Of a stretch of 64,000 bases of DNA, positions 2,659 to 6,141 are shown piece after piece (positions within the stretch are counted from its first letter, which is position 1; every line of letters starts with the position of its first letter). A program made the position numbers and the translations under genes. The stretch lies in NCBI GenBank assembly GCA_044892525.1, contig CM097887.1:10912001-10976000 (forward strand). Reading direction: 5' to 3'. This DNA is from Schmidtea polychroa. Its lineage: Eukaryota. Below the pieces are notes generated by a model. It was not told the DNA's origin. It ran no database searches and saw nothing but the letters and a program-made list of their open reading frames with translations.

Positions 2659-2874
2659 ATGAAATTCTTTGCTTTATTTTTGATATTCGCGCTTTTCTTG
2701 GGAAATGCTTCGGCTAGCTGTAACTATTAAATATTTGTTTATGGAAAATATTAATTTTCTGTTTCAGGCAAATTTACATTAGAACGGGTGAAATCAACCA
2801 AATGTCATACAGAATGTTGCAGGGGAAGGTGTTTCTCTTGGTGCCGTCCCGGCTATTTTTGTCAATGTGCTTAG
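2659..2874 (+). CDS. Secreted 8-cysteine peptide (defensin/toxin-like), copy 1, 55 aa; exons 2659-2719 and 2768-2874
   Basis: MKFFALFLIFALFLGNASAS-CKFTLERVKSTKCHTECCRGRCFSWCRPGYFCQCA*; hydrophobic signal peptide; 48-bp GTAACT..TTTCAG phase-1 intron; paralog has the same structure. Confidence 0.85.
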
Positions 2875-3351
2875 TTGATATTACTGATTTTATCTACAAA
2901 TAATTTTAACAAAAATGGTTTCTTTTAATTTTAATTTCTCAGGCGTAAAAGTAATAAATACATTATAATATCATAAACAACAAAAATTACAAATAAAAGT
3001 GCAATTTTTCATTAAAAGTGAATAATAAATTTTATTTAATATACAATATTTTTTATTTGAATAACTGCTTTGTTTGGTTGGCAATTATTTAAACAACATT
3101 CATTATTATGCAACAATTACAAATTGGCAATTGGAAATAATATTTACAAAAGGAGTTTCAAAAAATCCTTTTAAAATAGAAAAGAAATCAGAGGTGANNN
3201 NNNNNNNNNNNNNNNNNNNNNNNNNNNNNNNNNNNNNNNNNNNNNNNNNNNNNNNNNNNNNNNNNNNNNNNNNNNNNNNNNNNNNNNNNNNNNNNNNNNN
3301 NNNNNNNNNNNNNNNNNNNNNNNNNNNNNNNNNNNNNNNNNNNNNNNNNNN

Positions 3352-3916
3352 AGGCTTTGACCCATATTGGTGAGCAAAATAAGGGCTGTAAGATTAAAAT
3401 AGTTATGTCTGATTTTAAAATTTTATTAAAAAATTTCGATAATAATTGTGAACGTGTGATTTGTGAGGCGTTGTTGATAAAATAATTGAATCCGAAAATT
3501 AATTTGCAGAATGCAGTAAATACTTGTGTTTTGAGTGTTTTTAAATTAGTTTTTAAATAAGTTTTTTATATTGTATGTATTGATTTTTGTATTAAATTAA
3601 ATAATTAATAAAAATTTTTTTTAAATTAATAAATTAAATTTTAAATGTTACAATTTAAAAAAAATAATATATTTTTTTATAAAGTAAAAACATTTTATAT
3701 ATATAATTAATAAATTTGTTTAAAATCCTTAATTTAATGAGTTATAATATCCCACCTGATGATGACAGGAAAACTGTCGAAATTAATCGTGAAAAGAATG
3801 TTTGATTGGCGCTATCTTATAATTAAATCATTGCCATGTATGTTTAACTATTTATTCAATAATGTATAAAGTGTTGATTTCTTGGTAGCAGCATTTTTTA
3901 TGTAAAACAATAAAAT
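3352..3916 (+). mobile_element. PLE pseudo-LTR copy
   Basis: Matches 11164-11637 and 13860-14294 (3' end of GIY-YIG coding sequence, AT-rich UTR, hammerhead, ORF start). Confidence 0.9.
3753..3791 (+). ncRNA. Minimal type I hammerhead ribozyme of the PLE (intact core)
   Basis: CAC-CTGATGA-T-GACAG-GAAAA-CTGTC-GAAA-TTAA-TC-GTG: stem I CAC/GTG, core CUGAUGA and GAAA, 5-bp stem II, palindromic stem III, UC cleavage site. Core-mutated copies at 1813-1851, 11553-11591 and 14248-14286. Confidence 0.8.
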
Positions 3917-5922
3917 NNNNNNNNNNNNNNNNNNNNNNNNNNNNNNNNNNNNNNNNNNNNNNNNNNNNNNNNNNNNNNNNNNNNNNNNNNNNNNNNNNNN
4001 NNNNNNNNNNNNNNNNNNNNNNNNNNNNNNNNNNNNNNNNNNNNNNNNNNNNNNNTCGATGATATGTTCGTGCGTACTACGGATGTGAGTTAATAAGTTT
4101 TGAATAAGTATGCTTAATTATATCAATTTATGTAATATATTTTATTTATGTTGGTAAGTGCGTGTGAGTGTAAGGAAATTTGAAGCACCCAGCCGAGTCA
4201 CCGGTAAATAAACAGTCTTGGGATAGTTGGGACGAATGTATGTAAGAACAAAAAAATTATAATGATTAAATAAGGTGTAACAACTATAATTTAAAATTGA
4301 AACTTTTATTTACAATAGAATTAAAAACCTTAAAATTTGGATAGTTCAAGGTTGAGTTTTAATATTTCAGTAGCTGAAAACTTTGTTTCTTGGAATTAGA
4401 GATAAGCTCAAATTGGGAAATCGAACACGTCTATAAATGAAAATTTGGATCGTAAGGATTCGGGAGAACTGAAATTTATATTTTAAATGTAGATACGAAT
4501 AGAATTTAGTTAGTTGGAGTTTGAAAAATTAATTAAAATTGTTAGAATGTTCTTGAATAAGTTTGAGATGAATTGAATTTAATAACTGTGGAATATTCCT
4601 ATGGATAAATTTTCGTTGTTGGAGTTTGAGAAATTAATTCTAATAATTAGAATAATCTAGTTAATCTTTTTATCAATTTTTTTTAATCTTCGATTTTTTT
4701 CTATTTCTAATTTTACTATAGAGATAATTTACCATTGTAAATTATTGCTATATAGTTTTTTAATCTAATTCCACCAACTCAACGGGAACACTTATGTTCG
4801 TAAAAAAAGAATCCTAATTGGATTGTTGTCAAAAATAACCATAAAATCAAAAATACAAAAATCTACTACAAGTAACAATAATAATAAAAATAGTAATAAT
4901 AATAATAATTATAACGATAATAAAAATATTATAAGAATTTTTTTTTTAAATTTCACCACTGATTTTTTTCCATTGAATTTAGTAACTAGAGCGCTTGAAG
5001 ATTATAAATCTGTAAATATATCGATGTTTTTGAAACATCGACAAAACATCGATATATTACTGAGTTANNNNNNNNNNNNNNNNNNNNNNNNNNNNNNNNN
5101 NNNNNNNNNNNNNNNNNNNNNNNNNNNNNNNNNNNNNNNNNNNNNNNNNNNNNNNNNNNNNNNNNNNNNNNNNNNNNNNNNNNNNNNNNNNNNNNNNNNN
5201 NNNNNNNNNNNNNNNNNNNNNNNNNNNNNNNNNNNNNNNNNNNNNNNNNNNNNNNNNNNNNNNNNNNNNNNNNNNNNNNNNNNNNNNNNNNNNNNNNNNN
5301 NNNNNNNNNNNNNNNNNNNNNNNNNNNNNNNNNNNNNNNNNNNNNNNNNNNNNNNNNNNNNNNNNNNNNNNNNNNNNNNNNNNNNNNNNNNNNNNNNNNN
5401 NNNNNNNNNNNAATTTAATACCAATGAACTTTACTGTTCTATTTATAAATTAAATTATTAAATGTATGAAAATAAATCCAAATGTTTTGTATTTGTAAGA
5501 AGGTCTCTTATAGAAAAGATTAAGAACCCCTGGTATATACTATTCTAATAAAGAGAATGGAAAATCTCGATATCCGCAAGATGTGATTAAATCTTTCATT
5601 CGAGTAAATTTGTGTAAGTTTAATTGTGTTCAAATATCCGATGGGGGCTCAAATAAGATTTTCGGTTTCATATTAGCACAATATATAATGTGATTGAAAA
5701 GCTTTTGATATTTGAATTTTCTTAAGAATATTTATTTCCTTGCCACGTTTTTCAAATAAATTTAGTAAAATCTTGTGACCAATTTATGGTAATTATTCAG
5801 TTGCGAGGTCTCAGATAAGTGAAATAGCTATAAATGTCACGGAAATTACTTTCAAATATCAAAAAGTGTTCATTTTCTATTTTGCTAAATTATTCACAAC
5901 GTTTTATATCTAAGTTTAGATC

Positions 5923-6141
5923 ATGAAATTCTTTGCTTTATTTTTGATATTCGCGCTTTTCTTGGGAAATGCTTCGGCTAGCTGTAACTATTAAATATTT
6001 GTTTATGGAAAATATTAATTTTCTTTTCCAGGCAAAGAAAAATATGAATGGGTGAGACCTTTCCATTGTCATGAACAATGTTGCCATGAAAAGTGTGTCA
6101 ATGATTGCAAAATCGAATATTATTATTGTATGTGTGGTTAG
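5923..6141 (+). CDS. Secreted 8-cysteine peptide (defensin/toxin-like), copy 2, 56 aa; exons 5923-5983 and 6032-6141
   Basis: MKFFALFLIFALFLGNASAS-CKEKYEWVRPFHCHEQCCHEKCVNDCKIEYYYCMCG*; identical signal exon, 48-bp intron, same Cys framework as copy 1. Confidence 0.85.

Follow-up and report, generated by a model that had tools for sequence, protein, structure and literature searches.

How can two neighbouring genes be nearly identical in their promoters, introns and 3' regions, and yet encode mature products that share little besides their cysteines? This question is raised by a pair of small genes on a 64,000-nucleotide (nt) stretch of Schmidtea polychroa DNA (assembly GCA_044892525.1, contig CM097887.1, positions 10,912,001 to 10,976,000 of the forward strand), which is referred to here as the window and whose positions are counted from its first letter. 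An earlier note on this DNA had described the pair as duplicated genes for a secreted peptide with eight cysteines and a hypervariable mature exon. Here, we compare the two genes, copy 1 (2659-2874 from ATG to stop) and copy 2 (5923-6141), both on the forward strand. We find that they differ almost exclusively in the block coding for the mature peptide, an arrangement that selection on this block and recombination around it may have produced.

Divergence between the two genes is concentrated in the mature-coding block

The starts of the two genes lie 3,264 nt apart in the same orientation, and the window contains just these two copies. We aligned them piece by piece. The upstream flanks match at 503 of 507 positions, with one additional 2-nt indel (509 aligned columns), exon 1 is the same at all 61 positions and the intron at 46 of 48. 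The 3' flanks agree at 272 of 274 positions and, past a transposon that is inserted in copy 2, at 47 of a further 48, and a 53-nt block ahead of the gaps that precede the upstream flanks is identical at 52 positions. Pooled, the surroundings of exon 2 differ by 10 mismatches in 991 aligned nt (1.0%), which bears out the claim that the promoter, the 61-nt signal exon, the 48-bp intron and the 3' region are nearly the same in both copies. In contrast, the mature-coding block carries 42 differences in 105 aligned nt (40%) together with a 3-nt length difference, and the contrast between exon 2 and its surroundings is highly significant (Fisher p = 2e-37). Moreover, the edges of the diverged block are those of the coding sequence: differences begin 6 nt into exon 2 and end in the final sense codon, and the stop codon with the 14 nt that follow it is the same in both copies.

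Both copies carry the signals of spliced genes for secreted peptides

Each gene consists of two exons parted by a phase-1 intron with canonical GT..AG ends and a pyrimidine tract. The codon of the first cysteine (Cys1) is split across the intron in both copies, its T lying in exon 1 and its GC in exon 2, and reading through the intron in the frame of copy 1 leads to a stop after 23 amino acids (aa). The predicted precursors are 55 aa (copy 1) and 56 aa (copy 2) long, with 35 and 36 residues, respectively, encoded by exon 2. Signal cleavage is predicted between Ala-Ser-Ala and Ser, Cys1 follows one residue further, and neither a pro-region nor a dibasic site is present. No N gap touches an exon or an intron, so both reading frames are continuous.

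The expected signals also surround the coding parts at matching distances. A TATAAAT box stands 94 nt 5' of the ATG in both copies (2565-2571 and 5829-5835), an in-frame TAG is located 6 nt 5' of the ATG in both (2653-2655 in copy 1), and AATAAA is found 79 nt past the stop (2953-2958 and 6220-6225). The TATA box is bracketed by an inverted repeat, which has perfect 14-nt arms in copy 1 (2439-2452/2587-2600) and 22-nt arms at 86% in copy 2 (5695-5716/5851-5872); the sole 3-nt cluster of upstream differences (2431-2433) is situated at the edge of this structure. Such repeats may be a coincidence in AT-rich DNA, and the window is AT-rich, with a GC content of ~20% between genes and of 35-43% in coding and transposon blocks. 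On these features, both loci have the appearance of genuine spliced genes, as yet unannotated, that encode secreted peptides with eight cysteines. It had been suggested that genes of this kind escape callers of open reading frames (ORFs), and indeed the ORF listing yields just fragments of 25-29 aa here.

Within exon 2 the disulfide scaffold appears to be the constrained part

Read directly in both copies, the mature peptides have the same cysteine framework, C-x11-C-x3-CC-x3-C-x3-C-x5/6-C-x-C, in which C-x3-C occurs three times and C-x-C once. The eight Cys codons are also the same and in the same order (TGC, TGT, TGT, TGC, TGT, TGC, TGT, TGT). Five other residues (K, E, V, H and Y) are common to both peptides, which gives an identity of 13/35. 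The net charge, counted with His excluded, is +5 in copy 1 and -1 in copy 2. In all these respects the earlier description of exon 2 was accurate. Furthermore, 13 of the 13 conserved residues keep identical codons (P = 2e-4 under randomised silent sites, n = 2 sequences), and each of the 22 aligned codons that differ, out of 35, differs nonsynonymously. One position is changed in nine of these codons, two in six and three in seven, on average 1.9 of the 3 positions. Identity at the variable codons is 36%, against 27% expected from composition, and lies just above that of shuffled pairing (P = 0.02), with ~1.5 substitutions per site. Despite the 40% nucleotide divergence, the open frame, the position of the stop, all eight cysteines and the in-frame nature of the 3-nt length difference have been kept.

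By the Nei-Gojobori method, nonsynonymous divergence (dN) in exon 2 is ~0.6 and rises to 1.0 when the Cys codons are excluded; synonymous divergence (dS) is 0.25-0.38. The dN/dS ratio, which the earlier note had proposed to check for elevation, is thus raised (1.6-2.4) but not significantly so (Fisher p = 0.30; ~17 synonymous sites). Because the conserved residues retain identical codons, silent divergence should be unsaturated, roughly at dS < 0.6, and therefore the loop residues have changed faster than the silent sites. We also considered a mutator targeted at a single base in exon 2, which is ruled out by the unbiased substitution matrix. Within exon 2, only the disulfide scaffold appears to be constrained, and the loops seem to be free, or driven, to change.

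The earlier note had further spoken of rapid diversification. A rate of this kind cannot be derived from the flanks, since variable codons near saturation, at ~1.5 substitutions per site, stand against a divergence of 1% in the flanks; the latter were most likely homogenised and provide no clock for the duplication. The more economical reading is that the two versions of exon 2 may be much older than the flanks make them appear.

Searches for homologues and for a known fold

With both precursors as queries, no Pfam family was found at E<=10. A word-indexed search of 5.8 billion clustered proteins returned no homologue and no precursor sharing the signal peptide. For the profile, as well as for the structure models described below, only the exon 2 translations were used (2770-2871 and 6034-6138); Cys1 is left out of them, which weakens the models. 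A HMMER profile built from the exon 2 alignment had no match among 1.84 billion representative proteins. Likewise, an exact look-up of two small ORFs overlapping the genes gave no match, and none of four strings from these peptides occurred in the full text of papers. The peptides are contained in no protein database searched, in agreement with the supposition that the family is unannotated.

At the nucleotide level, an exact 24-mer of the signal exon was found 0 times in metagenome contigs of the Joint Genome Institute (JGI) and 0 times in viral contigs. A degenerate pattern of the Cys framework gave at least 120 matches in the JGI metagenome contigs, and all of them were rejected as low-complexity sequence of the (TGY)n type or as one repeat rich in Cys codons; not one was similar to the peptides. 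This repeat is often located at contig ends, occurs in the sample series Ga0105051-55 and Ga0335396/98, and has one frame rich in Cys, His and Pro.

The cysteine spacing had been taken as the motif of the cysteine-stabilised alpha-beta (CS-alpha-beta) fold of defensins and scorpion toxins. The motif is indeed present, and the likeness extends to peptide size, to 3-4 disulfides and to the combination of C-x3-C and C-x-C. AlphaFold2 placed the best model of copy 1, at a predicted local distance difference test score (pLDDT) of 74.6, in strand-helix-strand order (strand 5-8, helix 9-16, strand 30-33). However, four of the five models of copy 1 scored below 58 (49-58), the model of copy 2 reached 51.8, and Foldseek found 0 matches of the models in the PDB. 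Searching PDB sequences with each peptide (phmmer) yielded nothing, or chance matches to albumin at E ~7, and the exon 2 profile had 0 matches there. The peptides also differ from CS-alpha-beta proteins by the extra CC pair and by the 7 residues between this pair and the would-be middle-strand Cys. Since no profile, PDB-sequence or Foldseek match was obtained, the CS-alpha-beta label goes no further than the motif, and a cystine-knot-like fold is equally conceivable. Inhibitor-cystine-knot toxins with a fourth disulfide share the Cys order C-C-CC-C-C-C-C with a final C-x-C; for a knot, however, a first loop of 11 residues is long.

The genes are parts of a repeat unit with Penelope-like tails

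The two genes belong to a repeat unit of ~1.94 kb, which is composed, in this order, of a 53-nt hairpin block, a gap, the gene and both of its flanks, a Penelope-like 3' tail and a 41-nt flank. The hairpin is a perfect 17-nt inverted repeat with a 12-nt loop, present in both 53-nt blocks (1938-1983, with arms 1938-1954 and 1967-1983, and 5015-5058). Terminal inverted repeats around the unit were looked for and none were found. At 1860-1991 a unit end (tail and 41-nt flank) abuts a unit start (53-nt block) at 1938/1939, free of gaps. The same end and start blocks recur at 3800-3878 and 5015-5067, where an unclassified stretch of 1,136 nt lies between them (3879-5014, with the N run 3917-4055), possibly an insertion.

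The retroelement tails of the units are only ~94% identical: of 516 nt compared, 32 are mismatched, whereas the gene flanks show 10 mismatches in 991 nt (p = 4e-8). At the junction of tail and flank, 4 of 79 nt are mismatched (p = 0.009). With ~6% divergence in the tails and 1% in the gene flanks, the unit as a whole cannot be accounted for by one duplication age. Penelope-like pieces were noticed at 1047-1744 (reverse strand), 1752-1897, 3352-3837, 11164-11637 and 31283-31810, and a Penelope-like retroelement with reverse transcriptase (RT) and GIY-YIG domains lies at 11640-14294 (forward strand), with a partial tandem tail ahead of it.

The transposon in the 3' flank of copy 2 (6415-10979) looks intact, has identical long terminal repeats (LTRs) of 115 nt and is bordered by the 5-nt target duplication TTTAC (6410-6414 and 10980-10984); its insertion must therefore be very recent. 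The pol product of this element is 99% identical to a protein of Logan run SRR25018252 and at most 84% identical to proteins of ENA metagenome assemblies.

Eight N runs were found in the window. One lies upstream of copy 1 (1998-2149) and three in the spacer between the genes (3198-3351, 3917-4055 and 5068-5411). Copy 1 is consequently placed on an island of 1,048 nt between N gaps (2150-3197), the following pieces measure 565 and 1,012 nt, and the upstream flanks of both copies start exactly at gap edges (2150 and 5412). The sides of the gaps 1998-2149 and 5068-5411 are colinear with each other, the 53-nt block standing ahead of both, and the sides of the gap 3198-3351 are colinear with two blocks 131 nt apart in unbroken sequence after copy 2. 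Because no gap-free path connects copy 1 to copy 2, their tandem arrangement rests on scaffolding.

Possible origins of the contrast

The explanation to which we give about half of our confidence is that the two genes belong to a hitherto undescribed, lineage-restricted family encoding secreted peptides rich in disulfides, in which selection maintains the differences in exon 2 and conversion or recombination homogenises the flanks. From the gene signals we infer that each gene would be transcribed from its own TATA-containing promoter, that the intron of 48 nt would be spliced out, and that a signal peptide of ~19 residues would be cut off after Ala-Ser-Ala, releasing a peptide of ~36-37 residues with four disulfides and no propeptide. 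The neighbouring copies would repeatedly undergo non-allelic gene conversion or unequal exchange, by which the promoter, the signal exon, the intron and the 3' untranslated region (UTR) would be kept alike, and if the copies were alleles, ordinary recombination would homogenise the flanks likewise. The Penelope-like tails that flank each unit could be the substrates of unequal exchange. Selection, in turn, would maintain two distinct mature peptides. Strongly diverged DNA stops heteroduplex extension, and because of this block sharp edges of exon 2 would follow: the exon would be too diverged to pair, exchange tracts would end at its edges, and the boundary would be sharpened. A constrained scaffold combined with variable loops and a switch in charge is typical of peptides aimed at targets beyond the cells of the organism itself, for instance microbes, prey, hosts or partners. 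We infer a putative extracellular role against foreign targets, whether in defence, as a toxin or in recognition.

Several points weigh against this explanation. It is drawn from two sequences only, and the gene models are predictions from genomic DNA. The tandem linkage hangs on scaffolding across N gaps, the dN/dS ratio falls short of significance, and a conversion tract is not directly demonstrable from two copies. The lower identity of the retroelement tails could reflect exchange with other transposon copies, or the mutability of AT runs, rather than age. Finally, no homologue was found that would back the proposed function.

The most serious competitor, which we nevertheless consider unlikely, is that the two copies are haplotypes of one heterozygous locus that were assembled in tandem; exon 2 would then be a hyperdivergent pair of alleles under long-term balancing selection, and the flanks would have been evened out by allelic recombination. 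The short gap-bounded pieces on which copy 1 and its neighbours lie are what such an assembly would look like, as are the upstream flanks beginning at gap edges with no unbroken path between the copies. A flank divergence of 1% is within the range of heterozygosity of many invertebrates, and the transposon with identical LTRs follows one copy only. However, the gap-free junction of a unit end with a unit start at 1860-1991 fits a head-to-tail repeat, though an insertion polymorphism could mimic it, and between the transposon tails there are differences of 5-9%, more than one would expect of alleles. A clearly less probable reading deserves separate mention, in which exon 2 is a cassette existing in sharply distinct, very old forms, either at a single locus or within an array. 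It would be a determinant of recognition or compatibility under long-term balancing selection, or be renewed by targeted diversification, and recombination would be framed by the promoter, signal exon and intron, which do not vary.

One could also take the 1% divergence of the flanks at face value. The duplication would then be recent, and exon 2 would have evolved ~100x faster, under extreme positive selection or through targeted mutation that spares the Cys codons. The sharp boundaries would suit such a process, as would the fact that all changed codons are nonsynonymous and the 13 conserved ones are free of silent changes. Targeted mutation has been discussed for conotoxins. On the other hand, ordinary selection was argued for in that case (PMC3823881). 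For the present genes, a recent duplication would mean that all three codon positions took up ~1.5 substitutions per site over the time in which the flanks accumulated 0.01, and we know of no reported ratio of rates near this over a whole region. In addition, the substitution spectrum is without the single-base bias expected of a dedicated mutator, and the transposon tails of the same repeat unit are 6% diverged; we regard this scenario as doubtful at best. Hardly credible, in our view, is the idea that the frames are non-functional and are present by chance, or as decayed remnants, in a 2-kb repeat that may be associated with transposons. It is true that the genes are known from sequence alone, that neither Pfam nor the protein collections contain a homologue, and that the unit sits among pieces of transposons. 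Yet two frames have stayed open with 8/8 cysteines, the same stop and an in-frame indel in spite of near-saturated divergence, and 42 of the 52 differences fall within 105 nt that match the coding block exactly, unlike neutral decay; the signal peptide, the splice sites, the TATA box and AATAAA are each located where a gene would have them.

Comparison with known peptide families and gene-converting duplicates

The Cys order C-C-CC-C-C-C-C occurs among conotoxin frameworks. In conotoxins, a conserved signal peptide is combined with a hypervariable mature peptide and with position-specific preservation of Cys codons (PMC3823881), and the present genes show the same three traits (n = 2), as the earlier note had recognised. 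Conotoxin precursors are, however, tripartite (signal, propeptide and mature peptide), and no propeptide is found here. The S. polychroa genes are also set apart by their two exons with a 48-nt intron, by having no sequence or Pfam match, by the AT-rich host genome, and by a 99% identity between copies that extends even over 0.9 kb of non-coding flank.

A similar pattern has been published for MgCRP-I of Mytilus, an orphan, lineage-restricted multigene family whose Cys codons are protected and whose positively selected sites are found only in the mature region (PMC4558851). The likeness includes gene structure, with a phase-1 intron in the region of the signal peptide and the mature peptide and 3' UTR in the last exon. 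In contrast to the genes described here, MgCRP-I peptides have six Cys and a pro-region with a dibasic site and are encoded by four exons; no sequence similarity was detected.

With respect to the shape of divergence, a parallel is provided by gene-converting duplicates, in which, according to theory and to the example of exon 5 of the red and green opsins, a peak marks the selected segment (PMC3924837). There as here, divergence is low in introns and flanks and rises locally where selection holds the copies apart. In the present pair, however, the peak is near saturation across the whole 105-nt block rather than at a few sites, and the homogeneous flanks include the promoter and the 3' UTR.

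Features of the locus and of the rest of the window

The features of the two gene copies and of the repeat unit are collected in the table.

Table. Positions of the peptide genes, their flanks and the associated repeat and transposon sequences in the window
Feature	Position	Strand	Remarks
53-nt block, start of unit 1	1939-1991	+	52/53 identical to 5015-5067; stops just short of N gap 1998-2149
Copy 1 upstream flank (putative promoter, 5' UTR)	2150-2658	+	99.2% identity to 5416-5922
Copy 1 exon 1	2659-2719	+	61 nt; signal peptide MKFFALFLIFALFLGNASA, followed by S and the first base of the Cys1 codon
Copy 1 intron	2720-2767	+	48 nt, GTAACT...TTTCAG, phase 1
Copy 1 exon 2	2768-2874	+	predicted mature 8-Cys peptide and stop TAG
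Copy 1 3' flank (putative 3' UTR)	2875-3197	+	runs to N gap
Penelope-like element 3' tail (3352-3837) and 41-nt flank, downstream of copy 1	3352-3878	+	counterparts 1752-1938 and 11164-11637
53-nt block, start of unit 2	5015-5067	+	same hairpin; stops at N gap 5068-5411
Copy 2 upstream flank	5412-5922	+	aligned to copy 1
Copy 2 exon 1	5923-5983	+	signal peptide
Copy 2 intron	5984-6031	+	48 nt, GT..AG
Copy 2 exon 2	6032-6141	+	predicted mature 8-Cys peptide, one residue longer, and stop TAG
Copy 2 3' flank as far as the transposon insertion	6142-6414	+	aligned to copy 1
LTR retrotransposon, Ty3/gypsy-type gag and pol	6415-10979	-	inserted in copy 2 3' flank
Copy 2 3' flank, resumed past the transposon	10985-11033	+	47/48 identical to 3149-3197

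The far end of the window is occupied by a single open frame of at least 3,789 codons (52631-64000, forward strand), which continues past the window end and for this reason escaped the ORF listing. Its domains are, in order, Retrotrans_gag, zf-CCHC, a Monjiviricetes-type viral fusion glycoprotein (E = 2e-67), aspartyl protease, RT, RNase H and integrase. By its domain content it reads as a very large Ty3/gypsy-type retroelement of gag-env-pol order, an order that has been reported in nematodes, bryozoans and flatworms (PMC13524379). The preceding region (46000-52600) is GC-rich (40%) and A-skewed, and may be the 5' part of this retroelement. It contains a 250-aa ORF with no Pfam match (48441-49193), a RING-finger ORF (50066-50551; zf-C3HC4_3) and eight 75-nt tandem repeats (51156-51751).

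Probable host genes were noticed on the reverse strand. One is an intronless ORF of 89 aa (39379-39648), which, read by eye, we take to be the dynein light chain LC8, and exons with WD40 repeats are found at 42127-42450 and 44167-44478. There is, in addition, an orphan ORF of 262 aa with a signal-like N-terminus (33374-34162), for which a 40% match in Logan run SRR33002330 is the sole homologue. Eight ORFs of the window, the putative dynein light chain among them, had no exact match when looked up, and a comparison with Rfam returned 0 hits. On the forward strand there are also a fragment with a hAT transposase dimerisation domain (16658-17080) and one of a type-B DNA polymerase (DNA_pol_B_2; 30805-31257), the latter possibly from a Polinton-like element.

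Implications

The family described here is new and unannotated, and it follows a mode of evolution for which cone-snail toxins and defence peptides had provided earlier examples. The locus offers a clean case of a hypervariable peptide exon in near-identical non-coding DNA, in which the peak of divergence coincides, nearly base for base, with the mature-coding block. If more members exist elsewhere in the genome, the partition of a 216-nt gene between gene conversion and diversifying selection would become measurable. Should the improbable reading of exon 2 as an old cassette be true, the locus would be an animal counterpart of the hyperdivergent loci of self/non-self or host-parasite recognition, built on a peptide of 36 residues. 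Such small spliced genes are in none of the protein collections searched, and lineage-specific repertoires of defence peptides and toxins are, to this extent, under-counted.

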